From positions 1-33,418 of the forward strand of contig NW_005434650.1 of assembly GCF_000315625.1 (NCBI RefSeq): 33,418 nt of DNA, written 5' to 3'. Origin of the DNA: Guillardia theta CCMP2712. Taxonomy: Eukaryota > Protista > Cryptophyta. The notes under the pieces are model-generated. The model saw only the letters and a list, made by a program, of their open reading frames with translations, did not search any database and was not told where the DNA came from. The translations under genes were made by a program, and so were the position numbers. Positions 4,901-33,025 of this stretch are shown in pieces (position 1 is the first letter of the stretch; the number at the start of each line of letters is the position of its first letter).

Positions 4901-7900
4901 AGGCTCGAGTGGTCACAGGCACAGAACCCTCACCTCGCTATGGCAGACAAGGTTGTTAGGGATGATCCTTTTTACAGGGCAGTTGACAAAGTTGGCAGGG
5001 CAATCAACTACAGGCGTGTTGCCTGCCATGGAAACATCACCGCCGGACACCTCTAGGTAAGTACAACAACTCGTGCTTACCTACGCATACTCCAGCATAC
5101 ATCCCACAGTAGTCCAGGTTCGCATTCATACCGTTGCACTGTCCGCAGCAGTCGACAACAGCACCGCTGCAAGACAGACACATCAAACGAGAAGAGCTGG
5201 AGTGTTTCTGCCTTCACCCGTTCGGCTGCCCACTGCCGACACAGTCGCAGATTCCTTCGCTCTGTACAGTCAACAGAGCCTTGTTGGCAGTTCTGTCCAC
5301 GCAGAGTCCACATACGCTGACCTGCATCGACAGTGAGAAAGCTAAAGTGAAAGCGTCATGTTAATCTTCACTTCTTGCGTGCCAGGGCAAACGGTCCCTT
5401 GAAAGTTGCACTGCCCTGATGAAGCTCGAGTCGCCAGATGAGCTTGGAGTGTAGATCCAAAAGCAGCACCTGCACGGTTGATCATCAGACCCAGCAATGG
5501 CAGAGGAATCGATAATGTCACCAGTGTACTTCAAGCTCACTGTAGAGGAAGTCGTCTGGTCCACACAAACTTCACACTTGTTCTTGAACTTGGGTGCCAA
5601 GCAAGGATTTCCTTCCCAGTCGCAGATCCCTTGTGTAGGCAGCTACACACAGTCCTTCAGTTACAAGAAAAGAAGCTGGGAGACTTACCGCTTGGTCCTG
5701 GCAGACTTGGCACTTGTTGTTGACTTTGAGCGGGTTAGAGATCAAACCATCACAGCTGAACACAAATGTTATCAATCATATTCATCCGATCATAACCATC
5801 AGATCATACCCGGCAAGAGTATCAACGGCCGCAAAGGTAGTAGCGTGAGGCGTGCGGCAGGTGATGAGGCCAGGCGTTCCCAGTGGATTGACAGTCTGTA
5901 TGTCTGTCTTCCACTTTGCGGTCACATTGTCCCAGTATCCACATCCTACCAACTGATCGAGCACAGGTCATCCTCAGTCACAACAGCACCATGCTCACTC
6001 ACCGTCCTTATCCCTGTCGTGTTGCTTCTGTTCTCGGGTGGCACGGTGAACACCTGCAGCTGCATGGTGATGGGGTTTGCCAAGTTGGCCACTTGCAGCA
6101 ACTGAGGCACGGTTCCGTCTCCTACTGTCCCAGCTTGATAGAAGTTGAGCACCACCGAGCTGCTTCTGCTCTTGTTCGCATCTGGCCCGAGCGAGGCGTA
6201 CGGATTCAGCTCGTGAACTTGCACGATGGTGTCGACCATTTTTTTCGCTGCCGGGACGCTCGCCATGGCAGCGCTTGCGACAGTTCCGAGATCCTTCGGT
6301 AACACGATGTTGTCGAGTCGGTTCGGAATGTTCACGATCTGGATAGTGACAGGCGACAGGGTGAGCTTATCGACCGCTTTCCTGATGGCAGTGATGTTCA
6401 ACGTGCTGGTCTCAGACTTGTACGGCTCTCCATCCACCCTTGACCTCATCGCAGCCTTGACGGTGTCGTCCAACATCGAAATGCACTTCTCAGCCGCGTC
6501 ACTGGCGGGCGACCTGCGCCGTGAGAGCGCCGTTGCTGACAGCTGGTTCACCAGGGCAAGCCCAGCAAGGACTGAGCTTGCCGTGTTGTCATCCAACGAG
6601 ATAGTCTTGTCCGCCAACAGCTTGTCATAGAACTGCAGCGAGGATGCCACCATTGCTGCTTTCTTCTCCGCAGACAGACCACCAACCGCCGACATCACAG
6701 AGAGCATGCTGGTGCCTAGCTGGCTCCTGACGGAATCTGGAATGTTGGGCGAGCTCACCATCCCCAAGGCGGTGGCCATTCCTTGATCGAGGACGTTTCC
6801 TAGGTACTGTGAGTCTGAAGGTAAGCTCATCAGTGCGATGGAAGTCAGTGCCAGAATCCTGCTCGGATCTCCTGAGGCGAGGATGCTGTTGATGTTGGAT
6901 CCTACATCCGAAGAAGAGTCCGCAGACACCGTCACAAGGCAATCTTGAGACGAAGAGGCTCCACAATTCGCTCTTGTGACAGCGCCCAGAGCGTCTGTGA
7001 CAAGACAGTACACTTGGAGAATGTTGGAATCTCCCTTGGGCAAGACAGTTCGCATGGTGGTCTCCATTGACTTAGAGCTGAGCTGAACAAGATTGTTGCT
7101 GGTCTTTCTGTAATCAACAAAACCAAACTCTATGGACAAAGGCAAATCTTCGTCCACCCAGAAGGGAGCTGAGAATTGAAATGAAGTAGAAAGAGCGATT
7201 CCTAAAGCTGGACTTACTATGAAATCACCCAGTGAAGGAGGCTTGTTCATAACAATATCCACGCTTGCAGTGCTTGTCAGCCCCGCAAAGGTTCCGAGCA
7301 AAGTGATGGAATACTTGTCTTGTGAGGCCATCAAGATACCAGGTTCCAACACAAGGCTCACAGTTCCCCGAGCCGTTCCTTCAGAGTATCTGTTTGGATC
7401 AACTTGAACTGTCGCAGCGTACTGGATCTGCGCAGGAGGCGGGTCAATGCTCCAACTCGTTTGAACCATGTCCTGCAAATTGGTTGGAGACGCGAAGACT
7501 TGACCAGTCAGCCTGATCTTCTCGTTCATGTTGTACTTCACCTTCAGCCCAGAAGTTATCTGGACGGAAGGAATGCTCACAGGGGCCAAGTAAGTTTTGA
7601 TTCGAACAACATCTTGACCATAGAATGCACTGGAAGTGACGTCCGATGGGCAGACGTCTCCCTGACTAGCGTACAAGAACACTCGGAGCATGATGTAGTA
7701 GTCTGTGCCTTGCGCCAAAGTGTGAGCTGAAATATTCCATGTTGGCTGCTGACTTGTCAGAATGACCTTGTTTGTCAATGCTTCAGTACAACTCCAACAG
7801 TACGTCAGATCTCTCAACCCTCGCTGCATCATTGGGATATTCGGGTTGTAGGAATTCGTTCCATCCAGGATGAGATCGTCTACGTATGACACAGTGCGAT

Positions 7901-10900
7901 TTCCTCCCACGATTTCTGCGACAGGATTGGAGGCTACAATCGTGACGAGAACAGTGCTGCTCTGTGACGTCACCGTTCCGAGATGCTGTGTGATAGTGAG
8001 AGTAAAAGGATACTGTTGTCCAGCAACGAAAGGCAAGGAAAAGCTTGGTATGAAGAGGTTGAGACTATTCTTCATGATGCTGCTGCTCTGGAATGCGATG
8101 GAAAAGTCTTGATCTGTACCGCTGTAACTCCATGCAAATGTTAAAGAGTAATTGGTCAGGCAAAAGGTCGAAAAGTTTGAAATTCCTTGGAGCGCAATGT
8201 CATCTTTCAGGTTGAAGTACTGCTCTTTGTCGCCGGAGATGCGCACTCGTCCTAAGCGTGGGTTTCTCATCGTCAAGTCGAATGTCCCTAGGCCACTGTT
8301 GCCAGCGAAGTTGGTTATGTTGAGCTTGACTGTGTACGACCCTTCCTTCATGCATGTAATATTGCAGTTACCGGATACGCGACAGGTCTCGCTGGGGTCA
8401 CACGTGAGGAAAGCAACGAGTGAATATCCCGCTGAAGGAAGGATCATCAACCCGGTGACACCTGATGGCCTTGTCTCGATCTTCCACTGAACCGACCTGT
8501 GCATCATCGTTACTAGAGATCACAGCTGAGGCATCGAGGCGCTTACGAAAAGTTCCTTCCAAGTCTTCCAGTACTCCTGTTGAAATGTAAGCTAACCGAG
8601 TGACTAAGGTAAGATAGGCTAGTACCTTCGCGCGTCCAGGCTGATCGATGCGCAGATGTCATGCTCCGAGAACCCATCTATCTTCACGACAGGGGTGGGG
8701 ATCGAGCTGAGAACTGTGGAGAGACGGATGGATTGATACAGATTCGGCGGGAACGCATAGGACTTGGCCAGCTGCATCTCAACATTTGTAGGAAGAGTCA
8801 CCGCCAACATGCCGAGTTGAAAGTTGAGCTCTGCCAAACTGACGATCCCATCAGGGGAAGCCGGAGTGGTCAGGATCCCATCGTAAGCTTCCTTGGAAGG
8901 ATCTTTCTGAATCAAGATTGGGGGCCAAGGGCTCTGGAAAAGAGAATTTCCCAGAAATCCTGAATTATTCTGCGGACGAATGAAGGAATCCATCCTGAAG
9001 GACGGATTCTTGCCTATCTTCATGATCAAGGTTGTGCTGCATGCATGTATCAGATGGCAATGAACAACTCTTTCAACAGAATCACTTGTCTGGGCTCCAA
9101 AGGCATGTAGCAGCAGTATCAGTGCCGAACAGCCCGACTGTTGACGCCTGTAAGAAGTTGAGGCATCCCGACGAGCTGGAGCTCAGGCTGGCAAGACTGC
9201 AATCAAGTGTGAGGTAAGGTAAGCAAGAAATCGATCAGGCGCACTTTCTGTCCGATAACCCAGCGATATCCGTTGCAAGGTTGAAGCGGAATCGGATCTC
9301 ATCGAAGACGCTGGACAGGAAAGCGCCGACTGATATCGGTATCTTAGCTGTCACAACCGCAACAGCTGTTTTTCTGTACCTGGATAGGGAGAATTTGCGA
9401 TGTACTGGAAGAATGTACAAGGAATATTGATGGCCGGGCAATCCTGAAACTTAGAGATGGGATAGAAGTCCACTCGGTTCAGGGTGACAGTCAGTGGGAC
9501 TCGGACTCCAACGGCGAACGGAGGTGCTGCACAAACTATGCTTGCATTTGTCTCTGAGGTCGCAGACAGAACAGAGGACTCTGAATATTGGTTTCCAAAT
9601 CTGCCGCGGCTTGTCAGCAATCAACATGCAGGAAGAATCAGTGCAAACCTGCACTGAAGGCGAGTGACTTCATAGAAGTCCACAGGATCCTTCGAGCACG
9701 TTACAACTGCCGTTGCTGGAACATCCGGTGGACAAGGGATCTATTCTCAGGATGATTAGAATTGATTTAGATCGATCAGAGGATGATGCCTGTGTCAACT
9801 TGGAAAATGAAGTGTTTGCACAATCGCAGATGGCATAGTCCGTTGAGAATATGCTGTCCCCATTGAAATCTTGTCCAAAGTCTTGATTTTGTGGGAACAG
9901 ATTGTTGGTCATACACCACAGCTCGTTGGCATAGCTGGAACCCAAACTGCAGTGGAGGGTAAATTTCGACTTCAACTGCATACTATGAGTATTTACCGGA
10001 GAGCCGCATCGTCGTTGGTGCAGCTGTAGTAAGCCTGAGGTGCTGAAGTGCCTTGCTTCTTGTAATAAAAGGGAAACTGGCATTGCCTCTTGATCGTAGA
10101 GCAAGCTGCAGTGCCCGTGCACGTGAGAGATTTGCGGGTTCCCTGAAGAACGGTCAGGTTTCTCTGCTAACATGAATCAGGAATCATATACATCTGCATT
10201 GAGTGTAGAGACCACACCACTGTTGAACCTGACGTTGCACCTGAGAGCAAGTAAGACAAACCAAAGCTTGAGAAGACCCTCACCTGCTGTAATTCACCAG
10301 CCCGCTTCCAATCAAAGTGACCAAAGTCCCTCCTGATACGGACCCAGCTGGAATCTTGGTATAATCAGCACTAGCAGCCAAGACACCTCCTTGTGCCAAG
10401 GCCAATGCAGGAGTTGGAACAACCTGGAAATGACTCGTCAGCATGCTCGGTTGCATCTCGCCAGTTTCAGAAAACCTGAGCAATCCTTGGGGCTGTGAAG
10501 TAGAAGTACGATAGAGAGTTGGAGTATTGTTGTTGATTTCCAGTCACCCGGATACTCACTGTGGTCAGCAGAATTCCACGTGGTGGCGACGAGCAGAGGA
10601 GGGTAGTATCATCCACTACGGTAGCGCTTACGATGGTGTACTGTTCGTGAAGGAAATGCGGTCAGACCCTTACAACGTGAGTAGAAGAGTCAAAATTTTT
10701 CTCACATTCAGAGCCGAGTCAATGAACTGACATTCGAAATTTTGTTGCGAGATGGTGAAGCGCGAAACTGACAGTGTAATCAAAGTATTTCCCACGTCTC
10801 GGCCTGATCGAGGGAATATTCTGAGCAGAGTGATGTCTTCGTAGTAGAAAAATTGGCTACCACCAAGATTACAGAATTTCAATGCATCGAGAAAGGCATG

Positions 10901-13900
10901 TACCGGGAGGCAAGGCTGGTGGACAACACCTTGTCGACCAAGTTAAAGGTGATGGAGAAGTTCACCTACAGTAGAGTTCAGTGGGGTCGATTGAGGGCAG
11001 GGTTTGAAAAAGTCAACCAGTCCAGTGACACCAGATCTGCAAGAACAATCACCCCATCGTTTGTCCAGCTGAAAGTTGTTCGTGGTGGGACAGAACTGGG
11101 CGGTAGGAACAGGTGAAGTCCCAAAGAAGGGATCATTCTTGGTGGTGTTGATACAGGAAGTTGTCAGAGCGCCATTCCATTGAAAGGGGAAGACGCAGGA
11201 GCTCTCCGTCGACTTTGTTCCGTTCACGAAGGTAGCCCTCCATTCGCAAGACTGGGGCGCGACGCATGTAACGGTGGAAGCGTCGATGAACGTCGTCGGC
11301 GAGTAGGAATTGATTCCAAACACACACCTAATGGAGAGTCAGGAGGTCCAGGCACACGGATGTTCGACTTCACCATGCAGGGCTCTGTGAAAACCTTGCT
11401 CCAAAAAGGGTGATCACTGTCCCACCCGACAAGGGGCCACCGGACGGCTTGATCGACGTCAACTCCGGCCTGCTCATGTCGTACTGATACACGAGAGACT
11501 GCAGGCAATCGTTAGCGACTGAAGAAAGAAAGTCACAGAAAGCCTTACACTCGGTGGCAACTGGTAAAGATTCAAACCAAGTTTGACGTTGATGTTACAG
11601 AGGAGTTCAGTAGTCGAGGTACACTGTTGGATCGGAAGGGTGACGTCGGATGCAGTGGTTGTTGCCGTGGCATGCATCTGAGACAAGGACGTGAAGTCGT
11701 ACGAGCTCACGTTGTATCGCATCAAAGGGGTTGTGCAGATTGTCTGGAAACAGTTGCATGCACACTTCAACGGGAACTCCCAGGCAGCGGGCATGACGCA
11801 TCGGACTTCGTTCGGATTGATGTAGATCGCTTTTCGAGAAACAGAACCAGTGGTAATGGTTCCATCTGTTATCATCGAAGCTGTGGTCGGGTAGAATAGG
11901 CATGACAGTTGAGGTACATCAACGAATCCTTGCCCGCGAATGAGGAGGGTACCGCCTCCTCCTCCTGAACCCGTCGACGGGAACAAGGTTTCGATGATCG
12001 GGTTGGCAAAGGTGAAAAACAGAGTGTTGGAATACTCCGCCGGTTCGCCGTTCAAGGAGACCGAGACCGAGACTTGACCTGTTGACGTCACAGTGGCCGG
12101 GGCCATACACATGAACGAGTCGATGACGGTTGATTTGACATACTTTGCGAGAACAGCTTGATTGCCGAACTTGCAGTAGATCTTCGCTGGCAAGGAAGTT
12201 GACGAGCCGCACCCTTCACTCGAAAGTACTCCGAGTGGGAGGGGGAGCTGTTCGTTAGGTCCAGGGCATCCTCTGTACTGATCGAACAAGTTGTTGCCAT
12301 CGACTTGCACCAATGTCGGTAAGCCAATGCTGGCAGCCTCTGGTTTCATACGCAAAATCTGTCAAGCTTGTCAAGACCATGCAAGCAACAGGTGAGAAGA
12401 CTTACGCTCGGTCGTTGATGAAACAAATAGTAAGCGTTTGACAGGGTGATATCGCCGGCATTCAAGAGATAACCAAAGCCATTCACAATGCCGTGGAGAA
12501 TCAGGCCGAGCTTCGCCCTTGGTCTCGCGGGAATGATGTCAGGAACAATCGCCGGGGCTTGACAAAGAGCCATGGTTTCGTTTACGATGGTTGCTCGAGT
12601 ATACTTATTCGGCACATTCCAACGATCTGCAACAGGAGCAATGCTCTGGTAGTCAAAAATACACCAGGCAAAGTTTGAATTGCTGCTATCACAAGGAATA
12701 GATGCTGTCTTGTTGCAAAAGTCTTTGCCGATAACTGTGATGTTCGTTTGAGCATCATAGATCCCGTTGGTGGGAGACACAGCAAGCACGCTAGGACGCG
12801 AGATGAAAAGAACATTAACATTCTGAGTTCCACTGTTTCCGACGAAAGACTTCGAATCGAGGGCAATGGAAACATACACCAAACTTGGATACTTGAGAAC
12901 AGGGCTGTGAATAGGGCACACAAGAAACGTAAAAAGTCACGAAAGTCTCAAAGAAGCATATGCAGTTCATACCTGGTGCAAGATATTGAATACAACCCTC
13001 CATTTAGGGCAAAATCAGCAGGGACAATCACAGTGCTGTTCGGCACGGCCTTGCAAACGCCCTGAATGCACAACATGGACTGGAATTTGCACATCGCCTG
13101 CACAACAAGGTCAACATCCATTAGCTCTCTTGCAAATCTGGTATACCAGAGCGAAGGAGCTATCCACAATCGTAACAACGTCGCAACCGTTGCAAGTCCC
13201 AGCGATCAGTTCTGGTCCGATGGTCACAACCACTTGGCTTCGCTTCTCGCAAGAAGCTTGCAGGCCGCACAGCGTGTTGGCTGCATCGGTGATAAGACCT
13301 GCTCCCGCACCGCAGTTGGCTCCGCAGTCCTTGAGGATCCTTGAAGGGCTCCAGCTGTAGATTACCGGGGAGCGGTAGAAGAGGATGCTAGAGTTGGATG
13401 GTCCGCTGTAATACTGACCTCCATCTGTGCTCAGTTGAACGATCGTGTTGACCGGCATCTCAGTGCACTCCCCCGCGAACAGGCAGTCTGCGATCGAGGT
13501 ACAGAACGTGCTGTCCTTGGGTCCTCCTCGACAGAAGCGCATCCGAGGCAGGATGAATCGAACAGTTGCAGGGCAGATGTTGGTGTCGCCAGTTGCCGTT
13601 GGGTTCAAGATGATGTTCGGGGCGAAACAGAAACTCATTGCGGCAACAGCGCTGGTGTAGTTCACAGGGCAGCAGGTGTTGGGGTTCATTCCCTCAGCCA
13701 GGCAGCAATCGTTGGGTCCTGTGGGGTTCTCATTCGTTGGAAGGCAATCATCCCTGGAGCAGTATCCGTTGAATTGTGCGCAAGTTCCCACGGCTCCAAT
13801 GACTGAGTGAATCTGCGCGGGTATCCTAGGAATGTCGACGCGAGCGTTTATGACCGCTATCGAAACCCTCAGCATGTTCAAGCTGTGCATCTTGACAAAG

Positions 13901-16900
13901 TCAAGACAAGCACTGTTCTCCACTGGGACCTTCTGAACTTTCTGGAAAGTGGCATCGACGTAGAGTTCTCTGATTTGTGTGTCATATAGATCGGAGTCAA
14001 CTGGAGCTGAATTCGAAGTCAGATAAGCCGTAGAGAACGGTCTGTGGAAGGTGAAACTCGACGTGTAGGTAGTGAACAGCATTTCAGAGACATCTGTGAT
14101 CGAGGTATCTGGTGAGAACTGAAGTGTGACTGTGGATGTCTCAGCAGCTCCTCGAGTGGGGAGGGTACATCTATATTGAGTATCGCTGATGAAAGTCGCA
14201 TCTCTCACGCAAGGACCTGGTTGTTGTCCTTGGATCGTCATACAGGGCATTTCTGGAAACCTGCACTTGGCAGGCCTCGAGGAGTCGAACGAGCTGCCCG
14301 TGATCGTAACAGAAACTTCCGTCTCAAACAGGCCGTAGAGCGGAAAGAATGACACAGATGCAGGAACTTGGAAAAGATTGAATGATACCCCATTGGGGGG
14401 CAAAAAGGACAGGCCGTTATCAAAGGATATTTGAACCTTCATCGTGACTTGGTAGTTGCCCTGGAAGACATCTGAAGTGCCTTGGAACGTTGCCGTGCCG
14501 ATGGTGAATCCAATCGAATCAGCGGATATTGCTCCAGGAGCCAATGAGTCTGCTGGTGATGTTTTTTTATAGGTCGAGTCACCATTGACGATTCTCACGA
14601 CGAAGGTAGTGCTCTGGAAGGTTGTGTATGGGCTGATCAAAGACGACAAGCCAGTTCCGAGCAGCACAGGTGAGACAGCAAAATAAGCCGGGATCTGTCA
14701 GAATGGAGGTCAGGAACACAGGAGAAGAGTACACGAAAATACAAACCTGACTGGGTTGCATAGTTTGAATGTTCACGTTGTACACAGTGAAGTACACGGT
14801 CTTGACAGGAGTCTCGGGCACCGTCAAAGGTGTATCACATCCAGATGGTCCTGTTCCCCCTTGGAAGTAGTTGATCTTGATTGGGAGAAATTGACTGTTG
14901 TGGAAAGAAATGCACGTGTGATAGTTTCCGGCTAGAAGGGAGGGAGTAGTACCCTTCATCTTGACAATGCCATCGCAAAATCCTCTATCCTCCACAAGAG
15001 TAAGAGGTACATCATGACCATTGGAGCAACAAGAGTCTGCATTGAGCGGGTCGCACACTCCTGGAGATAGGCGATAGATGATGTTGGTTGGCACCAGCAA
15101 AGATCGGTTGTACAAGAAACAATTGATTCCCGTGGTGTCACCTTTGTTGCAACTTGCAAGCTGTATGAACGTATTAAATGTTTCAGTTTTGTTCTCGCCT
15201 ATGAGCGTGTTCTTTGAGGTTCCGAATTGTGTCATGAAGGTATCCGCAAAAGATTCGAAAGTCTTGTCTAATACAACAGGAGCATCATAGAACGTCAGAT
15301 ACTTATTCAGTGCAGTCGTCCAGTCGTAACCATTGAAACTGATAGAAATAGCAAAGAATCCAGGACCTTGCACACTCGTGTGAGGCAATCGCACGGAGAG
15401 CGTGTCTGGAGAGATGAACATCGCATCGCACGAGACCCCCCCGGTTGCACACTGTAAATGCAAACATCAGCGAATTATGAAATCAGGGAGAAGTGAAATA
15501 CCGAATCCACGTTCGAAGCACTGAGCGAGCAGTTGCACGTTCCGCCGATCAAACAAGATTGGGTTGCACACTGGCTCAGCCGACATAGAGTTTGGTTTCT
15601 GAGCTGCGGATCGGTTGGAGCATTCTGCAAGCGAACAGTGAACGTCAAGTTTTCTTTGGCAGGCGAGTTTCTCGGATACACGTCAACTACTCCAACATCT
15701 TTCTGATAGCTCAAGTCGAAGTAGCGACCCTGGACACACGTCAGAGCAGCAGGTATCAGAGTCTTTCCATACCTTCAACGCACGTGAAGTTAAAGTTGTC
15801 TCCGGGTTCGACATCAACTGATTGCCTGAAGCGTCACAAGTTGAGAGCACGGTAGAGGAGCAATCCTTGAAGCTCCGTCGCATTGCAGCAATGCTGACTG
15901 TGCTGTTGAAGTACCGCGATGCCCCAGTTGGAAACAGCTGATTCAGAGGAGGAGCGGCGCAAGAGTAGCATCTGTCGACATCGGCACTGATGGGGTTGTT
16001 GCCTCCGCAGCAAGTTGCGCTTGTGACGGTTGCATTCCGCAAGTAGTACTTACTTCCAGTGTCAAATTGGAAATGGAATACGCAGACCAATTCAAAGGTG
16101 AAACCAACCCACTTCTTATAGGATCTCAAGCCAAAATTCAGACTTGTACCTCCGCTCTCCTTGGCGGTTACCGGAATGTAAGAAATCACATCCGGAGTGT
16201 ACGGGCACAGCTCTCCAGTAAATCCAAATTCAGAGGTCAAGTTCCGAAAGATTCCTTGCGAATCCATACATATACAGTTTGCACACCCGACCGATGAGCT
16301 GTACAGCTGGTAAGTATAGTTGAAGAGGATGTCCGCAGCATCTTTCAGATACAACTCGATGGCAAGAGATGGTGGTCCATAAAGCAGATCTTGAAGCTTC
16401 AGGGGATTCCATATTTGATAGGAGAGAGCCGTGACATCGTTGTTCACGGGCGTAGCAGAAACCACGGTAGAGCAAGACGATGGCGCTGTGCAGCCGGTGT
16501 AAGTCACCTTCAACATCAGCGAGTAACATGGGGAGGAAGAATAGCAGAGGTCCTTTCCAAAGATGGTCACGGTCTGATTCGCCCCCAGAATTCCTCCAGT
16601 ATATGGACTGATCGAAAGGATCGTAGGATCTCTGTAGTATCTGAAGAGTGGCTTGCCGTTGGGAGACGAATAGTCGATAACTTGTACCCCATTCAAGGAG
16701 ACATACATATCGAAACTTTGATCAGCAGTTCCAGGGGGGGTTGTACAAGTGACCTGAGTGCTACTGACATACTGAGCAGGTATGAAAACAGTAGTAGAGG
16801 ATTTCAGGACACAAGAAAGGTTCGCATAGTTCCCAAAGTTCGTCCCCACAAGAGTGATCTTTGAGCCACCTGACGCTCTTCCCAAACTCGGTCTGACCGA

Positions 16901-19900
16901 GCTCACGGTTGGATAATTTACGATGGGAATGGAGAAGAGGGTGGAAAAGAAATCGACCCCGTTGAAGCTGATATCCATCAGCACTGTATCAACCGACTTC
17001 CAAGCGTCCTGAATAGCCGGGAGCGTGCATTGAATTTCAGTATCAGAGATATTTTGTCCTGTATTGTTGCCTTCATTCTCGACCCCTTGCAGCTGCATCC
17101 ATTTATATCTACATGTGACGGGAAGACCCTGAAACCCTGTTCCCAAGAACTTCATTGTCACTGAATCGGCAGTTACTTGCCGTACGTATGGATTAGTGCT
17201 ACTTGTTATTATAGCACTGTACACGAGAAAGTCTTTGTTCCCAAAGTAGAAGAATGGGGGATTTGGGAAGCTTACTCCGACATTGAACTGTTGGCGCTGA
17301 GTGATGCTCTTGCCATTGCTGTCCTCCAAGGGGTTTGGTGTAACAAAGCTGATCAAGTTCGTTGATGCAAGGTACCCGTTGCTGATTGTTATATTTGCAT
17401 CAGTACGACCAAAAATGAGCTGGAAGTTGTTGAGATCGAATGCTCCAACGGAACACTTGTCTTTGGTAAGCTGCGTGTAGGAGAGATTAACCTGGTTTGT
17501 CTCCTGGCATATACTTTGAGACAGTATGAAGTTATCAGCAAAACTCAGAAGCACATTGAAGCGAGACCCCCCATCCACAGGCCCAAGGGACGGTGAAATC
17601 GACTGAACGTTGTAGTATCTCAACATAAGGAACTCGTCGGAGAAGTCAGCGCCGTTGAAACTGAGCCGGACCTTGTCTGAAACTGGAGTAGACTGTGCTG
17701 GCGCTGTACAGATAGTCTGCGTCGAGGATACGAATTTTCCAGGACTTATGACATCTCCAATCGAACAGAAAACGCTGTCAGTGCTCGTGAAGAAGTTTCC
17801 AAAGACTGTCACTTGGTTTCCCCCTGAGATTCCAGCAAAGGGGTTAGCAAGCTTCGATAGCTGAGGGTATGGATAAAAGAAGAAATTGGTGTGTGTGAGC
17901 GAGAGCTGGGAGTCATCCTGTCCTTGCCCATTAGGCGACAGGAAGAGAGAAGCCAACGTGGAGTATCCGAGCTTCGACCCATCACCGAGATCAGGTGTAG
18001 AACAGGTGACGAAGTTTGTGCTCCTGAAGGTAGCAAGCGTCTCTAGTCGCGTTCCTAAACTCTGTAGGGACCGATCAAACGAGAAAGATTTCAAGGTCTA
18101 CAGTTACCGTAATAAAGACGCAAGCCATGCCTCCTGTGTTTCTGAAGGTGCTTGCCTTGACGGCGAGATTCATAGGATTTGTGGCTACATGACCAAGAGG
18201 TTAGGAAACAAGGAGCTTTCAACTAGAACTATCCTCACCTTCCAACATGATCGTAGTCCCACCGCTGGCTGGGCCGAGAGAAGGGTACGCCGAAGCAACA
18301 CCGTAGGGCAGAATGTATTGGAAGGGGCTGTTGCCAACGTAAGATTGGCCATCGATGGCAAGCTCGGTAGGGAAGATGGCTTCCATCCCGATCTTGAGCT
18401 GAGGACTGCGCGGAAAACACGAATCAACATGAAAAGATATCTCTTGCAAGATTCAAAGATCACCTCCTACAGGTGATCACTGTATTGCTGAAGACTTGAA
18501 CTTGCCGTGAGACCTGTTTTGTGGAACTTACAATCTGAAAGAGCGGTATGAAATCGAAGAAATACCGCTGATCCAAAGCGGCATGAAGGCCATTGATTGA
18601 GTGTAGTTGGGCATGATGGAGAGGAAAAGTTATATCCGGTCAGAGTGATCCATGTACCTCCTGCAGCGCCAAAGTCAAACATTCTGAAAAGCGGAGCAGA
18701 AAAAGACAGCACCTCCAACAAATCCAGCAGAGGGTGTGATTGACACGAGGGTTGGAACAGGCACAGTATGAAAGAAGACTTTCGGCAACCCAGTCCTGGT
18801 CAGAAGGTGAGATACTTCGTTCTCAAGAGCAGCACCTCACATGTCGTGCCAGGGACCCTCGGTCGAGTCCCATTGCCCGTAGAAGTAATTCTAAGGTAAA
18901 TGTCAACAAACCGTATCCTTCGAGGCAGAAAGCAGGGACTTGTTACTGACCTGCCCTCCAATCGGAGGAAGGTACACCTTCAAGCAGGTTGGACAACCAA
19001 GACTGAGGCATATTAGGCAACAGAACAACTCAATAGTAGTTGAGTATACCTGCCGCATTCGCATGCATCCAAACTGAGGGAAAAATCTGTTGCTTCAAGA
19101 AAGATATCTTTGGGCGGAGCCGGACACTCCAGGGCTCCAGTCAAGCTGCTCGACTGATATGCGGGGGTATGGTATGCCCACCACTGAGTCAACTTGTCGT
19201 TCGATGTTGTACCAGTCGATTCTGCAACTCGACCGAACCTGAAGAACATGGTCAGATCGTCTTTCGTCCAAGCATCATGTAATAATTGACCTGCAATATG
19301 GCGTCAAAATCTGGTCGCTCAATGTTGGGATAATCAAATTATCTCCTTTCACAGTTACGATTGCTTTGCCAAGGACAGGAACGCAAACAGGATCGATGCT
19401 AAGGACGGCGTACGTGAAGAAGGTTGCTCCCACATTCTCAAACTGGTATCCATTCGAGCTCGTGTAAACCACGAGATTCTTGGCACGTTTCATCTGTGGC
19501 ACGGGACATTGGATAGTGGCGATGTTGATGAAGCTTCCTTGAGACTGACACTGATCATCCAGGGAAACAGGGTCATAGAACTGACAGGTGAAGATTCCAT
19601 TTTGCGGGAAGTATGAACCTGTGATTGTGATCTGCGATAACGGTAAGAGGGTGAGCGATTCAGGAGGGAGAACTCACTGTAGTTTGTCGGTTGATGTCTT
19701 GTGGGCCCCGATTCAAACCAATCGGGCGGAGCGGTGAATAACTAGGATTGAGCCTTTGAGTCTTCACCTCAGGGGTGTAATACTCAAAGTTGGCTGTACT
19801 TCCCTCGATGACTATGTCAGATCCACGGATCACTACCGATCCAGCCGTTGCGCCATCGATAGTGACACATTGCGTTCCCGCATAGTCGGCCTGAGGAGAC

Positions 19901-22900
19901 ATGCAGCTGAGCTTGTCTCCATCATTGTAATAGTCATAGAAATTTAGTTCCATCGGGGCCTTTCCAATCTTCCCATTCACACTTGCAATCTGCGCAGATC
20001 AATCAGTTAAGTTGGCTCAAGTAAGGTCTGCTGTCTGCTCAAACCAGCCATCCGTTGATTCCTCTTGGATCGCAAGGATTGCAGCCGTATACGATGACAT
20101 CGTCTCCGATCTTCGATCTCATCAGCAACCTTCATCGCACAATCTAACGAGTTTACCCTCAGGTCAAGAACCCCAGGAGTGTATTGGTAGAATCTTGACT
20201 CAGGAGTGTAATCCCGGACCACAGTCGCTCTCCAAACCTGTTACCTCAAGGTTAAAGATTGAAAGGACAAAAGATGGCTAGAATCTCACAATTTGGGTCG
20301 TTCGAACATCGACCTGCGGGTCGCTGCATGAGTGAAAGTTGCAGTACAAGGTTGTGCTGTTCGGAGCATTTTGCCAGTCCACGATAAGATTATTCCATGC
20401 GATTACTCTTTCCAACGCAGCGCCATTGAGTGTGATGGGTGTCATTCCCACTACTGGACCAACTTTGGGTGAGATGCTTGAGAGGGAGTAAGTTGGAGGC
20501 CTTGCGCAGTCTGTGTCCTCGTAACTGCAAATCACAAGTCAGGAGGAGCTTCTGTTTCAGCATGGTACATCATCACCTCAAACCATTCTGCACTGTACAA
20601 ATACAAACTTTGTTGGCACCGCTCGTTCCACAAATTCCTTTGTTGTTGCATTCGATCACTTCATTCTGTGGGCTGACTTTGCCGGGACATTTCGCAGTCT
20701 CGCAGTACTCCCCCACGTAGATCGCCGAGCGACCTCTGTCACACGTACAGACACCAGGACAGTCTGCCCCACCGCATGCGCCGGGTCCTCCTGAACAGAA
20801 ACCATGACCGCTACATGACATGTTGTTGAGACCTGTGGAAGATGCTCAGTCATGAAGATTCATGAGGCAAACAACTTCACCGCTGCAGACGGCTGGCCGC
20901 GAACAATTCATCCCACTCCATCCTTCATCGCAAATGCATCCCAACGAAGAACAAAGTCCATGACCCGAGCAGACCTGAATCGGCTTAGTGTAATCTCCAT
21001 TTTGGTAAATTCTGCTGTCTGCACACATATCAATCTCGCACTCTTCTCCTCTGTATCCTGCTTCACAATTGCAAAATCCACAGATACGTTTTCCCCTTCT
21101 GTTGCAATCAACAAGTATGGAACAGTCTGCGCCCTCAAAGTTCTTGTAACAAACACACGTTCCATTGTGCGTACAAGCTCCATGACCCGAGCACCCGGAT
21201 GGGCACAAGGAAATCTCACAGGCGCTTCCAGAATATCCTGCATCGCAGAAGCAAGTGCCATCGCTCTGGCAAACACCTCGAGATGAACAACCACTTGGAC
21301 ATGACAGTTTCGAACAGTCTTCTCCTGACCATCCAGGCGAACAAGCGCAAGATGTATTTGCGCAGATTCCATGACCAGAACAGCCAGCTGGGCAAAAGGT
21401 AATTGGTACACTGCAATCACTCGATGTGAACCCCTGATCGCAAATGCAGGTCTGGTTGGCACAAACTCCATGTCCGGTACAGTTGTTGAGGCATTTGAAG
21501 TCATACTGACACGAATCGCCCCACCAACCAGGATCGCACAAGCACGTACCCGATTGACACATGCCTCTCGCGTTGCAATCCATCGGACAAGACAACGAAA
21601 TAGATGATATTTGGATGGAACAGTCAATGCCAACGTATGAAACGTCACACAGACACATTCCATTGGCAGAACATGCTCCATGCCCAGAGCATCCCATGGG
21701 ACAGATCGATGTGGTATTGACTGCTGATGGGATGAGACCGTTGACTGGCATTGACAGCTCACAATATATTCCTGTGTAGCCAGGATCGCAAACACAGGTA
21801 GTGCTGTTAACGCACATCCCTCTACTTGTACAGTTCAGGTTGCAGCTGTCATAGACCATGGGTGTGTCGCAAATAATACCAACCCAACCTTGATCGCATA
21901 GACAAGTATTATTTTGTGTGCATGTCCCTCTGTTGCTGCAGTCTGCTGGGCATCCATTAGCTGATGCTAGACTGCAGTCTTGTCCAACCCAAGTAGGATC
22001 ACAATTACATGTGCCTGCCACCAACAAAGTTTAGAGGAATCATGACTAGAGCATGCATTTACCATTCTGACAGGCTCCATGTCCAGAGCAATTACCAGGA
22101 CATCCACCAGAGAGAATAGCGCTGGTATCGGTATACAAATTCAACAACATGTTTTCACAAAACATGCCTCCATATCTGCAGCAAGTAGCCGTCAGAACCG
22201 CAAATTTGCTCGACAGTGAAATAGGCTCCTCACCCGAATTCGCATGCACAACTGAAATTATTACCAGTCCCGACACACTGACCATGTCCACTGCAATTAG
22301 TGATACACGATCCCGTCATCTGTATGGGAGTACACGAACAACTGCCATTCGATCCGGAACCAACGTATCCAGCACTGCAGTTTTGGCTGCAAAGGAACAG
22401 CGAATCGACCAGGCTACAATCACCTCCGGTCCAACCCAAGTCACAGGCCTGCACAAACAAATTCATAAGCGTGAAGAGGCACATGAAATAAGATAGACTT
22501 ACGCAGACTCCGTTCATGCAAGATCCATGATATGAGCAGGATGACGGACAGGTATCGTTGGTTTGCCATTGAAGGGAACAGTCTGTTGAATACCATCCAG
22601 CTGTACACTCGCATACAGATCCATCAATACAAGCACCATGGCCACTGCAATTTCTTTGGCTGCGGGGGAATTACCAGAACATTACGGAAAGTTTCAAAGG
22701 AAATACCATGCAGTGGTAGTCAACTTTGCCATTTCGCATGCTACTCCCATCCACCCCATATCACAAAGACAAGAAGCATTCTGTCCAGCTTGTTTGATGC
22801 AACTCCTGCGCATTGTTCGAAGATCAGAAGAAGTCTCTTTCCTTGAAGATTTTGTTGCTTTACCCATGAATGCAAGGAGGAACGCAGGAGTCTATTATTT

Positions 22901-25851: not shown

Positions 25852-28800
25852 ATGACTGCAAGTGAGCAGACGGCAGTGAGAGTTGCCGTCCGGGTACGGC
25901 CTCAGACTGCAAGGGAAAGGAGCAATCGTGAGAAAGATTGTATAGCCTGCAACATAACTACAAGACAGGTGATTCTTGATTTCCTATTCCTTCTGTATTT
26001 TGACTCTTGATACGAGGCGATTATTGGAGAGCGGTCTTTCACATTCGATTATCTTTTTGATCCATCATCAACTCAGCAAGACATCTACAACCAGAGCGTC
26101 CGGCCTCTCGTGGATGCCGCACTCTCGGGTTACAATGCCACGGTGTTCGCATACGGGCAGACCGGTTCCGGGAAAACGTATACCATGGGCTCTTCGTCAT
26201 GGTAGATGAAGTTCTTTCCTTGATTTGCAAGTAGTCTGAAGTGGTGGCAGGGATGGATTGACAGAGGATGACCTGGGAATGCTTCCAAGAGCGCTCAAGC
26301 AGATATTCGAGGAGAGGGGGCGTCGTGAGCAGTCGTCAAACATGATTCTGCGTGCTTCGTTCTTGGAGATTCATAACGAAGAACTCCGTGATCTCCTCTC
26401 AATCCCGAGTACCCTTCCCTTCGGCATTGGGGCCAGGAGAGCGACGCTGCAAATTCGGGAGGATCCCCAGGGAGGAATATATTTTGCAGGGGCTGAAGAA
26501 CGTGAAGTGGAGAGCTTCAGGGACATGTGCGAGCTCTTGGAACAGGGAACTGCTCGCCGAGCAGTAGGCAGTACTGAGATGAATGCGCACTCAAGCCGAT
26601 CACATGCGATTTTTACTTTGATCATTGAACAGCGATTGATCCGCGAAAGCGACTTCCTGATTGCGCTCAACACCAGTGACGGGGCTGGAACAGAAGATGG
26701 TGCAAATCTAGCGGAAGAGGAGTACATTGTTTCGAAGTTCCACTTCGTGGATCTAGCTGGAAGTGAGAGATTGAAGAAGACCAAGGCAGAGGGAGAACGA
26801 TTGAAGGAAGGTATCAACATCAACTCTGGTTTGCTAGCACTTGGAAATGTCATTTCTGCTCTTGGCGACGAACAGAAGAGGCATTCGGTTCATGTTCCAT
26901 ATCGAGACTCAAAACTGACAAGAATGCTGCAAGACAGCTTAGGTGGAAATTCACGTACTCTCATGATTGCTTGTGTCAGCCCTGTTGACAGCAACTCTGA
27001 GGAAAGTTTGAATACGTTGAAATATGCGAACAGAGCAAGAAACATCAAGAATACACCAATAATCAACCGAGATCCAAACTCTCATCTGATAGCACAGTTG
27101 CGAAAAGAAATCAGCACTCTGCGGAGTATACTCAAAGAGAATGGGATCTATCACACCAGCTTGCAACCTGGAAGCCCAAATCAAACCTTCAATCACACTT
27201 CGTTTCCACTGCATGGTGGCGAGATTGGAAGGGACGGCGAAGAAGATGTGGATTGCATGAAATCAGTCATCCAAAACCTTGAACTGCAGCTGATCGAGCA
27301 GTCGAGGCTCGTGGACAGTTTCAAACTTGCGATGGCGGAGATTTACTCGTGCACTGAGAAGCTTCAGGACGAAACTCAAATCTTGCGGAACTCCCCGTCA
27401 GTGACCAAAGATTCCAGCCTCTGCTGCTCTCTCGATCAGATCGAAAAGCTTCTGAATGGGATTCAGGAGATCGAGGAAAAGTGTCGGACTAAGGCAGTTC
27501 TCCGGGCTGCTTCTCAGCCCTGCCATGGCCTGACCTCAGGCTGTGTCTCTCGTACTGTCTCCTCGGGGCTACCCAACGACTACCCGATGTTCTCTCCTCG
27601 AGTTGTTACTTCCTTGACACCTCGATCGGCGAATCAGGAAGTTTTATCTGAAGAGAACTATCACTACTCCCCTCGTCCGCATGGTGAGCCGCAGAACTTG
27701 GGTATCCACCTGCCTACGTTGGGCTTGTCCCAGTTGAACGAGTGTGGGGACTTTGATGAAGCGCCCCTCACCGATCGTTCCATCACTACTGGAGATGCGT
27801 CTGCGAGGCAACTACAAGACATCAGCGACCTGGACGCTGTCTTGGTAGAAAAGGAGAGGCTGCTGCAGGAGCTCGTGAGGAACCAGCGAGAGTTTGACAC
27901 CATGAGGAGTGTCTACGAGAAGAAGATGGAGGACTTGCAGCACAGCATTCGCGCAATCGAGGAAGAGAGGGATGCTACCGTGAAGGAGCTCGAATCGATG
28001 GACAAGCACAAGACAGCCACCTCCTCCTCCGAGCAGCACCGAGAGCGATGGAATACGAGGTTGAGACAGCTGGAGGAGGAGCTGAAACGAATGAAGAAGA
28101 AAGTCAAAGACCACGAAAGGCTGCTTGCCTTCAAGGAGCAAGGTGACCAAAAGATCGCGAACCTGGCGCAGGAGGTGGATCGTTTGAAAGCCTCCAGAGC
28201 GCAACTGCACAAGAAGATGGCCATAGAAGCGAAGGGGCACCGGGAGCAGCGACAAGCACTGGAGAAGCAGATCCTCTCTCTTCGGAAAGCCGAGCTGGCA
28301 TCGAAGAGAACCATAAGAGAGCTTGAGACCAAGTTGTCGTCGGCAGCTCGTGCTGAGCACGTTGTCAAGCGAAAGGCGCAAATTGCGTTGGAGAAACAGA
28401 AGGTTGCGGAGAAAGAACCCGAATTGAACGACAACAGCAAGAATCAGGATGTGCTTGACTGGTTCCAGAACCTCCTCAGACGGGCTCTGACAGCAAAGGA
28501 TGCAGAGAATCAGATCCAGATGAATACAAGGCTCAAAGCTCAGCTGGAGTCAGAGATGAATGCCTGCACATCCAGGATGAAGAGCATGGATACGAAGAAC
28601 GTCTCCGAAGTCGAGTTTGAGAGGCAGAAGCAAGACTTCTATGATGAGTTGGAGTATCTATCGGCAGAGCTGGAGTTCAGAACCCTGGAGACTGAGAAGT
28701 CTCGCAGGCTCGTTAACGATTGCTCGAACGTACAGCTCGAGATTCAGGAAAGGCTTCCGCGGCTGTCGGACGCTGACGTGAAGAGATTGATCCTCTTTTG

Positions 28801-31800
28801 CTATGAACAGCTCAACAGTGAAAGGCTACAATCGATGGAGTACAAAGAGCAAGCCCAGGAATCCGAGGCCTTACTCCTCGAAGCACGACGGGCACTGGAT
28901 GAATCGAGGCAGGCGTCGCAGTCCTTAGACAGGAAGCATGATGCAGCCATCACGCAGATGCAGCGGGAGTACGAGTCAAAGCTGATGTTCGTCTTCGAGC
29001 AGCTTGAAGAGGCGAACCGAAACTCTGGGCCCACAAAGACCATCCTTGACGAGTGCCGATCGACGGAGGAGCAGCATGCGAACCACCACGTGCTGGTGCG
29101 CGGGGAGGCCACGAGTCCGAAGAGCCCCGCGAGGGAAGCATGGAGCTCTAGCCCTAAGAAGGAGCTTCCCTCCTCCCAGCTCCGCAGAGATCTGGACAAG
29201 GACATGCCCGGCTGGCATGAGTCGCTCGACTCGTCGATGGAGTCGTCAGGAGCTGCGCAGCAAGCCGACTCAGAGGTCGACGGCTTCGACCAATCCAAGT
29301 TCCACTTCGGCCGTGACAAGAGCGCAAACTCCAGGTTGCCCCCACCTGAGACGAAGAGAACGAGCGCCAGCTCCACCTCGTCCTCCTCCACCATCGACGT
29401 CAGTGCGGTGCAGAACATGGTGATCGAGAAGGCCGACAGGATACTCGCCTCGTCGAGGAGCGCGTCATCCAGCAGTGGTCAGCCGACAGGAGGTGGCAGC
29501 GAAGAATCGCATGTGCCCCCAAAGGAGCCAATCAAGATCTCAAAGCTGCCGCTGGACAAACTCAAGAAAGCCTCGCCTGAGGCCAAGAAGCAGTCTGGGT
29601 CGTTGAGCGATCGATCCAACTACGTCCACCACCGTCACCCGGTCGAGCTGAGTTACGCCGCTGACGTTCTCGGCCTGCCCAAGAGCGGCAGGAAGGAGGA
29701 CTCGAGCAAACCGGCAGAGCGTCCGTCCAAGAACGCGAAGGTGGACAGGAAGAGCAAGTCGGACGAGTTGCGGATGATGCTATCCCACCTGTGGGACGTC
29801 CTTGACATCCCCGAGAGCCATCGCAGCAAGTTCAGGTTGGGCACCAGGAGCCTTGAGATGGTGTGCAGCTGAAGTTGTTCCCAGGAACATGGTCTCGTCA
29901 TTCAATTCAAGGACAGATTCCGTACTGCAGGTCCTTTGCTTCTCCCTCCCGCATCCTCTTGCCTTAAGTTCCTTCCTCCTCCTCCTCCTCCTCATCGTCC
30001 TCCTCCTCCTCCTCCTCCTCCTCCTCCTCATCGTCCTCCTCCTCCTCCTCCTTCTCTTGTGCTCCCTCCGCTCCCTCCGCATGACTCCCTTGCTTCCACT
30101 ACATTTTTCATCGCTCCTTGCCCCGCAGGCCTACGAGAGTGAATTCGCTCTACAAACAAGGCGAGCAAGCGCAGCCATCGAAGATTACAGAAGGAAGCTT
30201 GAGCAAGGTGCCCTTCTCCCTCCCTCCCTCCCTCCCTCCCTCCCTCCCTCCCCCTTCCCCCTTGACGTTTCCGTCTAGCTTGGACCGAGCTGGGCGTGTA
30301 CGAGAAGCAATACCCAAGTTCTTGAATCTGCTGGAGGATGTGAGGGACTTGAAGCCGAAGGAGCAAGCCGGTGAAACTTGTTTGCAGATAGGACAGAGGG
30401 AGCGGGAGACGGAGATCCTTCGGCTGGTCAAGAGTGAGCTCGCTTCCTTAGAGCCTCGCCTTGTGCTGCACCGTACAATCAAGGTTCGCATGTGTCCTCC
30501 TCCTCGTCTACCCTTTCCGCCTCTCCCACTCCCTCCTCCTCTCAATCCTCCCCTCCTACAGTTCTCTCCTCCCCTCGGAACACCAGCACTCTCACTCCCA
30601 CATCCTCCTCCTCTTCCCTTCTCTTCGACAGCCTTCACCTGCTCAACAAGGTGTTTGCAGGCACAGCTGACGAGGAGGGAGGAGATTCTGCAGAAACTGA
30701 GTGAAGGAGCAAAGGATATGAGCAACATGAACACAATGACAAGCCAGCACGACGTTTACAAGAAGATGCTCCGCGAGTACCCCAAGGTGAGCAGGAGGGG
30801 ATGAGGAGGAAGGGGAGAGGAACTGGGTAAAGAAGGAAGGGATGACGAGGGGGAGGAGCACGAGTTTGGTACCTGACTGCTGCTGTCATTGTCTGCAGTT
30901 GATCGCATCACTGCAGAAGCAGATCTATAAGTGGGATTGACCTGTTTCCCAACCCCCTCAACCCTCCCGCCTCCTCTCCTCTTCCTTTTCTCTCTTCCTC
31001 CCTATCTCCCTTCCTTTTGCTCTCCTCTCCTTCCCTCTTCCCCTCTCCACAACGGCGCAGAATCTCCTTCTCCCGCCTTTCCCCTCTGCTCTTGAATATT
31101 CTTTTGATCATCCCATCGCCGTCTGCAGGTGGCAGGAGCAGGAGGGCAGGACATTCATGGTGGGGTCAGTGAAAGCCCTGGACCTGCTCGAGAAAGGAGA
31201 AGCCCATGACTCTGTAGCTCGAGCGATCCACCTCAAGGTCTTCCTGCTCCCTCCCCTCTCAGCCCTCCATTCCCTCCTCTCCTCTCCTCTCCTCTCCTCT
31301 CCTCTCCTCTCCTCTCCTCTCCTCTCCTCTCCTCTCCTCTCCTCTCCTCTCCTCTCCTCTCCTCTCCTCTCCTCTCCTCTCCTCTCCTCTCCTCTCCTCT
31401 CCTCTCCTCTCCTCTCCCCTCCCCTCCCCTTCTCTCCTCTCTACTACTGTTCATTCACTTCCTCCATGTCCAAATTGTCACGTTGAGTTTCTCAGCTGAT
31501 CTCGACGACCAAGAGCACGGGCTCAGGCAGTCTTTCTCACCAGGAGGAAGAAGCGACTTCGAGCACCTGCGATGCTGATCAGGACTCCAGCAGCTCTCGC
31601 TCGGTATATACCCAGGCCTTAGCTCTCCTGTGTCCCTTCTCCTTCCTCCCCTCCTCTTCCCTCCCCTCTGCTCCCTTCTGCTCTCCTCCTCTCTCCTCCT
31701 CTCTCCATTTGTCCTCTTCGCGCTTCCCTCCAACGCTCCTCCCCGTACCTCACCATCTTGCAGTCAAACTCGGAGAAACCTCTTCCTGCACACTCGGAAG

Positions 31801-31850
31801 ACAAGTCAGAGGACAGCGAGCAGGCCACCCCCGTCAGAGAAACGTGTTGA
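25852..31850 (+). CDS. Kinesin-4 family motor (KIF4/KIF21/KIF7/KIF27-like) fused to a C-terminal PRC1/Ase1/MAP65-type domain
   Basis: Motor motifs [17 protein letters not shown] (26155-26178), [20 protein letters not shown] and [23 protein letters not shown], plus a kinesin-4-type coiled coil. Manual exons: 25852-25968, 26017-26201, 26251-29835, 29885-29930, 30129-30207, 30279-30339 (frame anomaly), 30388-30483, 30661-30786, 30899-30930, 31129-31237, 31496-31603, 31764-31850. The last exons are uncertain, and exon-like blocks continue to about 32520. Confidence 0.9.
29972..30053 (+). repeat. (CCT)n microsatellite with CATCGT interruptions, intronic
   Basis: Directly visible in intron 29931-30128. 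Confidence 0.95.
30216..30262 (+). repeat. (CTCC)n microsatellite, intronic
   Basis: Directly visible in intron 30208-30278. Confidence 0.9.
31274..31415 (+). repeat. (CTCCT)n pentanucleotide microsatellite, intronic
   Basis: Long perfect run inside intron 31238-31495. Confidence 0.95.
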
Positions 31851-33025
31851 CCACAGCGCAGGTGCAGTTGCCGCTGCTCCTCCTCCGCCTCTACTTCCTC
31901 CTCCTCCCTCCTCCTTGCCCTCCGCTACCTCCTCCTCAGCTCTCTGCTCTGCCTCTACCGTATCCGTCTCCTGCTCCTCCTCATCTTTTCCTTCAGCTGC
32001 GCCGCTCAACAACTTCTGCCATGGCCATTCGGTTTGAAGCTCTCAAGCAATCTTATGCCCAGGTAATTTTCTCCTTCCTTCCTCTACCCTTATCTCCTCC
32101 TTCCCCTCGTCGGCCTTTTCTTCCTTCCTTCGTCTTTCCTTCCTTACTGCTCGAGCCGTACTCCTTCCCCCGCCGCTTTCTGCGCTTGCTCTGCTTTCCG
32201 TCCGCTTCCTCACCCGCCAGCAGGTTCGCTCGAGAACTTCCTGCTTGTCCAAGAGCGACAAGTCAACCAGACAAGAACTCGTCAGGAGGTAGAGCATCTT
32301 TCTGATCGCCTGCCTTCTCCATTCCCTTCCCTGCCTCTTCCCGTCCCTTGCTCTCCCCTCCGCTCCCTCTCCTTCCCTCCATTCCTCCTCTGCTGCCTGC
32401 CCCTCCTCCCGTGCGCATCCTTCCTGGTACTCATTCCCGTCTGCGGTCTGACCTCTGATCGCAGGGCACTGGAGGAGAAGGGGATTCTACCTCGCTCCAA
32501 CAACTTGCGGATCAGGTGAGGAGGCGTGCAATGTGGTCGAGCCTGACGAGGAGAGCAGCGAACAGGATGAGAACGAGCAAAGGGAGGTGACAAGGAGATG
32601 CCGGGTGGGTGCGGGCGGTCGTGACTCTTCCGGCAGGAGCAAGGAGGACCGGTCCTTTCTCCCCGCGAGACGAGTACGTTGACCCCTTGCTCTTCCTGCT
32701 GTGAGGCTGACGAGATGACCCAGCATCCTACTCTGACAACCATCGCTTCCAACCGCTCCAGACCCCTAAAGACCCCTCCTCCTCCCTCCCTCCTCCTCCC
32801 TCCCTCCTCCCTCCCTCCCTCCTCCTCCCTCCCTCCTCCTCCTCCCCTCCCTCCTTCCCCCCCTCCCTCCTTCTCTTCCCCTCCTCTTCTTTCCACTTCT
32901 CTCCACCGCCCTTCATCCCATCCTATTCCATTCTACACCCCATGAACCAACTCGCCGGTCGCGTCTCGCCTTGTTGTGAATATTGTACTTGTTACCCTTT
33001 TATTCGGGCACATCGCTCGAAACGA

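Follow-up and report, generated by a model that had tools for sequence, protein, structure and literature searches.

A kinesin-4 with a MAP65-derived tail in cryptophyte algae

The pairing of a kinesin-4 motor with PRC1 is the textbook minimal system for microtubule overlap length and has been studied in animals and moss. PRC1 is an antiparallel dimer: its binding domains are held at opposite ends. To our knowledge, the tails of KIF21A/B, KIF7/KIF27, kinesin-14, and KIF15 are WD40 or unrelated, and none is MAP65-derived. The N-terminal half of PRC1 dimerizes the protein (PMC7927185), its 1-168 region carries the KIF4A binding site (PMC10620760), and R377, K387, and K390 provide the tubulin contacts (PMC6857568). 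PRC1 with K387A/K390A continues to decorate midzone microtubules and to bundle them, and loss of the basic tail ends localization (PMC6683753). In moss, kinesin-4 and MAP65 are found on interphase overlaps (PMC10316633), and in Trypanosoma brucei the protein NuSAP2 carries a highly divergent, half-length MAP65/ASE1 domain C-terminally on a larger protein (PMC6144804). Kinesin tails are often specific to a lineage: among 1,624 kinesins from 45 genomes, one survey lists 105 architectures, and MAP65/ASE1 is absent from its text and supplements (PMC2867816).

Here, we describe a gene of the cryptophyte Guillardia theta CCMP2712 that encodes a kinesin-4. Its tail derives from a MAP65 and fails two of the tests that define one; that the protein is a midzone module is a hypothesis. 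The gene lies on the + strand of contig NW_005434650.1, in the 33,418-nucleotide stretch that we analyzed as a whole and call the window. The first-pass annotation of the window, made from the letters alone, knew of no such protein, and we found no kinesin-MAP65 fusion in the literature searched (subscription papers lay outside the search); the fusion is apparently undescribed. Like the pairs formed by KIF4A, Xklp1, Klp3A, or moss Kin4-I with PRC1, Feo, or MAP65, it brings together a kinesin-4 motor, a PF25764-type stalk, and a MAP65-family domain. Unlike them, it is one polypeptide, has no dimerizing, KIF4A-binding N-region, and has lost R377/K387/K390. With human PRC1 (4L3I, 3NRX/3NRY, 5KMG), Ase1, and MAP65, it shares the W..L repeats, the PK motif, the WE..G..F hairpin, the spectrin fold, and a basic tail, but it holds only half the domain at ~20% identity, with a divergent, variable loop and an attached motor. 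KIF21A/B and KIF7/KIF27 share its kinesin-4 stalk domain (KIF21-like). The likeness to NuSAP2 is one of architecture; that protein has not been reported to be a motor (PMC6144804). Elsewhere, the window carries an exon of a leucine-rich-repeat protein (62-949, + strand; LRR_4/LRR_9) and a very large, multi-exon surface-protein region (5946-22027, - strand) with tandem teneurin-type EGF repeats (20846-22027), IPT/TIG domains (13111-18094), and a REJ domain (5946-8507).

The gene starts at 25852, with the beginning of its motor split by two short introns, and probably comprises about 18 exons that end near 32769 and encode ~1,645 aa, the downstream part being placed by homology (Table 1). The guides were P0011 (UniRef A0A7S0ES40, with an automatic kinesin name there) and P0001 (EukProt), both from Hanusia phi, and P0012, an uninterrupted ORF on one 5,231-nt contig of run SRR15274662. 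The first-pass annotation had placed the motor and the first MAP65 motif in one 3.6-kb ORF, which is correct: the ORF at 26258-29872 (1204 aa, its motor portion starting after the P-loop) contains the motif at 29765, in the motor's exon. It had also proposed seven small tail exons between microsatellite introns. The seven exons, from 29885-29930 through 31129-31237, and their GT-AG borders stand; two of the introns, at 48-49 nt, are short and not microsatellite. The signature PK..W.EQEG..FMV spans exons 8-10 and, as anticipated, emerges only after splicing.

Table 1. Features of the kinesin-MAP65 gene in the window
Feature	Positions	Strand	Evidence or remark
Exon 1: start codon, first motor strands	25852-25968	+	tblastn of P0012; N-terminus matches Hanusia phi P0001
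Intron 1, 48 nt	GT donor at 25969	+	
Exon 2: motor with intact P-loop (GQTGSGKT)	26017-26201	+	homology-based; alternative donor possible at 26196
Exon 3 (3.6 kb): remaining motor, coiled-coil stalk, Ser-rich linker, first MAP65 helix	26251-29835	+	Pfam, motifs
Exon 3, motor with switch I/II and neck	to ~27075	+	
Exon 3, KIF21A-like stalk domain	~27806-28291	+	Pfam
Exon 3, low-complexity linker, ~240 aa, 19% Ser	29009-29728	+	
Linker, two short conserved helices	29390-29467, 29630-29683	+	in most relatives examined
Start of MAP65/PRC1-derived domain, inside motor exon	29729-29835	+	MAP65_ASE1 E 0.019; colinear with P0011
Exon 4: MAP65 rod part	29885-29930	+	spliced joints in 3 runs; 16/16 identical to P0011
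Exon 5: MAP65 rod part	30129-30207	+	homology, spliced contigs
Exon 6	30279-30339	+	one C missing after 30312; insertion in 4/4 runs including DNA
Exon 7: rod to spectrin-fold helix	30388-30483	+	homology, spliced contigs
Exon 8: spectrin-fold helix 1, degenerate tubulin-contact loop, to conserved PK	30661-30786	+	spliced contigs, alignment
Exon 9: spectrin-fold helix 2	30899-30930	+	spliced contigs
Exon 10: WxEQEG..FMV hairpin, last MAP65-fold helix	31129-31237	+	homology, model, spliced contigs
Exon 11: disordered acidic/Ser spacer	31496-31603	+	first letters are the loose end of 3/3 RNA-type contigs
Exon 12: spacer	31764-31861	+	homology to P0011; frame change at C-run 31828-31832
Exon 13: highly conserved basic C-terminal helix (RKSTT..RFEALKQ)	31997-32062	+	5 relatives; predicted helix
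Exon 14: basic continuation	32224-32288	+	homology
Exon 15: short conserved helix	32465-32515	+	homology
Exons 16 and 17, putative	32559-32586, 32637-32673	+	GT-AG, phases, partial similarity to P0011
Last exon	32724-32769	+	homology-based; ends where Hanusia protein ends; frame change at C-run

Transcription was followed over 27800-31262, short of the long microsatellite within 31263-32800, in three RNA-type runs from separate studies and one DNA run, the RNA label being the tool's guess. The RNA-type contigs are unbroken through exon 3 from 27800 onward and carry the joints 29835>29885, 29930>30129, 30339>30388, 30483>30661, 30786>30899, and 30930>31129, all GT-AG, with 30207>30279 seen as contiguous record positions; the DNA run carries none of the splice joints in this range. 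The joints of the tail, which the first-pass annotation had proposed to check against RNA, are thus seen in all three RNA-type runs. The stop at 29870-29872, which it had named as a possible transcript end, is ruled out by the spliced contigs, which continue downstream. Two other arrangements, a splice at 29860 and a direct join of 29835 to 30129, are also ruled out: the reads place exon 29885-29930 in between. Beyond exon 10, contigs of the RNA-type runs run on into the exon at 31496. One contig of 5,077 nt spans motor to tail. On the upstream side of 27800 it has 1,957 letters, and the coding sequence back to the start takes 1,851, so that by length it reaches the start codon; its 534 letters past 31237 fit the extended gene model. 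A single transcript joins the kinesin-4 motor and the MAP65 tail: the fusion is real and expressed.

Three one-base frame changes, each at a short run of Cs, fall in 2.5 kb of coding sequence: at 30312, 31828-31832, and ~32763-32766. The first puts exon 6 out of frame in the window and is an assembly error, since all four runs, DNA included, carry the missing C. The second is probably an assembly deletion that produces the apparent stop at 31848-31850, and other apparent frameshifts in the assembly may likewise be artefactual. The window also lacks a T after 30103, within an intron. The first-pass annotation had closed the gene at 31850; the Hanusia transcript protein is colinear with the window through about seven more exons, to ~32769, and on this colinearity we rejected the stop, which is very probably not the gene end.

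The motor classes as a kinesin-4, as the first-pass annotation had it, on PDB ranking, intact motifs, and the PF25764 stalk. The window was searched exon by exon, and relatives' database proteins stood in for the joined spliced protein; searched this way, both Pfam Kinesin and MAP65_ASE1 are matched. Exon 3 matches Kinesin at E 5e-78, and the KIF21A-like stalk domain (PF25764) scores E 5e-28 (98.5 bits against a cut-off of 33.1), its search bringing back KIF4-like proteins. All five of the P-loop, switch I, switch II, microtubule-binding loop, and neck linker are intact in exons 2-3. The closest protein found is that of H. phi, 84% identical over exon 3; when its motor was ranked against the PDB by phmmer, KIF4 came first (E 4e-101) and KIF7 just after (9e-92), and the first named motor outside kinesin-4 was KIF3B (4e-81). 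The fusion protein has no Cys-rich or WD40 tail.

The first-pass annotation had further identified the tail as a MAP65/PRC1 homologue, which is supported by Pfam, profile, and structural matches. The end of exon 3 alone matches MAP65_ASE1 at E 0.019 (profile positions 219-252), and the other small exons, searched singly, give no Pfam match because they are too short. In transcript-type relatives, the domain scores 46-58 bits (P0011 46.1, P0012 53.3) against a cut-off of 26.9, which P0008 also passes (29.7). The fusion tail covers positions 212-425 of the 477 in the profile, i.e., half. Searched against the PDB as a single sequence, the tail gave no PRC1 match; a profile built from three fusion proteins alone gave PRC1 4L3I (chain 239-436) as the sole significant sequence, at E 1e-5. 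With an AF2 model of the module (pLDDT 91), Foldseek places PRC1 entries at the head of its list (E 0.013), and the model aligns with 4L3I over 212 residues, within 226-450 (Z 9.7); the folding alignment included canonical MAP65s, so that this match is supporting, not independent. A shape search of the Atlas gave no row with TM > 0.4. On this modeling, the MAP65 part corresponds to PRC1 ~226-450, the last rod repeat and the spectrin-like three-helix fold.

Two parts of PRC1 are missing. A profile of 47 canonical N-halves recognized all 9 controls and gave no match to any fusion protein; by this comparison the dimerization/rod half is lost from the fusion, an apparent absence that the first-pass annotation had noted for the dimerization segment. 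The second loss is that of the tubulin-contact patch R377/K387/K390, conserved in 74-85% of 89 canonical homologues and gone from all four fusion proteins aligned. The D..R motif, present in 76 of the 89, occurs in none of the four; position 387, basic in 74% of canonical homologues, is S, A, or Q, and position 390, basic in 81%, is charge-reversed to D or E. The contact loop varies in length and sequence, and PRC1 positions 393/394/397 are still occupied by basic residues. In a quick tree, the fusion domains group into a single clade, whose stem is 2.97 changes per site long and for which no sister could be identified; because of this long branch, the donor lineage of MAP65 cannot be named. 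The idea of a self-contained crosslinker, a midzone module in one polypeptide, thus fits poorly: the R377 loop motif and K387/K390 are lost, the stem branch is long, and the geometry, a ~240-aa linker on an expected parallel dimer, is the opposite of PRC1's antiparallel arrangement. The loss of the dimerizing and motor-docking parts fits a Rosetta-stone history, in which a fusion makes the KIF4A-binding region 1-168 of PRC1 (PMC10620760) dispensable.

The fusion is common to cryptophytes. The first-pass annotation had suggested looking for the architecture in other algae, and it is present in H. phi, in P0012, and in further genomic relatives. P0011 and P0012 both combine Kinesin, KIF21A_4th, and MAP65_ASE1 above the Pfam cut-offs, L001 and L002 have uninterrupted ORFs, and an intron-poor marine metagenome gene holds the entire architecture within one ORF. 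In all, five further distinct genomic relatives show the kinesin-MAP65 order, among them four loci, one of which clusters with Teleaulax amphioxeia, where a kinesin exon is followed by the MAP65 exons in sequence and on one strand. An intron at one position of the MAP65 rod (29930/30129, before the A-Y-E motif) occurs in the window and in L004, L005, and L007, consistent with their orthology. Members are only ~47-52% identical to each other, which makes the fusion old within the group, and in all of them the module keeps its fold and its length. When 1.84 billion proteins were searched with a profile, 128 matches came up: fusion-type fragments, followed by canonical MAP65s that have neither a matching motor nor a matching stalk. 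Word-based searches for more fusions or a stand-alone cryptophyte MAP65 returned known members only, a blank that does not show absence. P0001 stops right after the first MAP65 motif, where P0011 has the full tail; it reflects either intron retention in the transcript or a short isoform that lacks MAP65.

The most conserved non-motor element, more so than the MAP65 domain, is the basic C-terminal helix encoded at 31997-32288. Five relatives match it over 23 aa at 78-96% identity, and it was located at L001:4771-4932, L003:16007-16147, L004:18151-18291, L005:9113-9253, and in L011 and L013. The 60 aa from RKSTT hold 14 K/R against 5 D/E, and the segment is predicted to be helical, not disordered. 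It resembles the PRC1 basic tail in charge, a likeness of composition. Its R-K/R-S/T sites resemble targets of basophilic kinases. In the linker, apart from its two short helices, the sequence is variable; these helices are possibly docking or autoinhibition motifs. Neither they nor the C-terminal helix has a Pfam or Atlas match.

Motor-plus-tail crosslinking, as in kinesin-14, KIF15, and other kinesins with a tail site, is the likely working mode of the fusion. In the reading that we favor, at a probability of roughly 45%, the motor heads would engage one microtubule and the tail would hold a second through a weak site, without the protein being a PRC1-like antiparallel crosslinker. By analogy with kinesin-4 biology, the stalk would pair two chains in parallel, with the heads moving toward plus ends, and the tail module would serve as a weak, diffusive second microtubule site, in contact through the basic residues that helix 2 still has and through the conserved basic C-terminal helix. 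The motor would tether and slide the second microtubule, gather at overlap ends, and limit growth there with no need of a separate recruiter, probably in mitotic or cytokinetic overlaps. Because both tail modules would sit at one end on flexible linkers of ~240 aa, PRC1's strict antiparallel selectivity is proposed to be lacking. A weakened grip is compatible with function, since PRC1 K387A/K390A still bundles in cells (PMC6683753). Against a weak second site stand the loss of the three best-characterized tubulin contacts, the charge reversal at K390, and the fast divergence of the domain.

These same losses lend some weight to a less likely reading: a pseudo-MAP65 tail without microtubule binding, acting as a cargo or docking scaffold (with kinases, CLASP-like factors, or a stand-alone MAP65 as candidate partners) or in motor autoinhibition through the C-terminal helix. 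The signature loop and LxxEEK motif, present in 67-76 of 89 canonical homologues, are absent from all four fusion proteins, the conserved surfaces are new ones (linker helix, last MAP65 helix, C-terminal helix), and the stem branch is long; yet the basic 393/394/397 and basic tail persist, and fold and length are kept across species. More doubtful is a broader proposal for cryptophytes, that one motor-crosslinker with a re-engineered microtubule surface builds and sizes the midzone, stand-alone MAP65 having been lost. It is improbable that the protein is an autonomous PRC1-like antiparallel crosslinker plus motor, a whole midzone length-control module replacing stand-alone MAP65. The fusion does join precisely the partners that work together in animals and moss (PMC10316633), the module still has the spectrin fold, and among 20 matches with the source looked up, most of them without a species name, no stand-alone MAP65 is labelled as cryptophyte; but the N-half for dimerization and rod is gone, the canonical tubulin contacts are lost, and a parallel dimer with a long flexible linker is expected.

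Kinesin-4 relatives are active in cilia too, and cryptophytes possess fixed microtubular roots. A non-mitotic role on flagellar roots, the rhizostyle, or furrow-gullet microtubule bands, or at ciliary tips like KIF7/KIF27, would suit these facts, the rank of KIF7 next after KIF4, and the interphase overlaps of moss (PMC10316633), but we consider it very unlikely: the motor is nearest KIF4, and NuSAP2, with a similar half domain, lies on the central spindle (PMC6144804). That the gene is an artefact of mis-joined neighbors or a decaying, frameshifted pseudogene, as the three frame changes and the truncated EukProt model P0001 might suggest, is rejected with near certainty, largely by the motor-to-tail RNA-type contig and the corrected frameshift, and the ORFs of L001 and L002 are uninterrupted.

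The conserved fusion suggests that the kinesin-4/MAP65 partnership also worked in the distant cryptophyte lineage. It offers a one-chain version for reconstitution, in which overlap control would operate with covalent recruitment, a parallel dimer, and a weakened grip.
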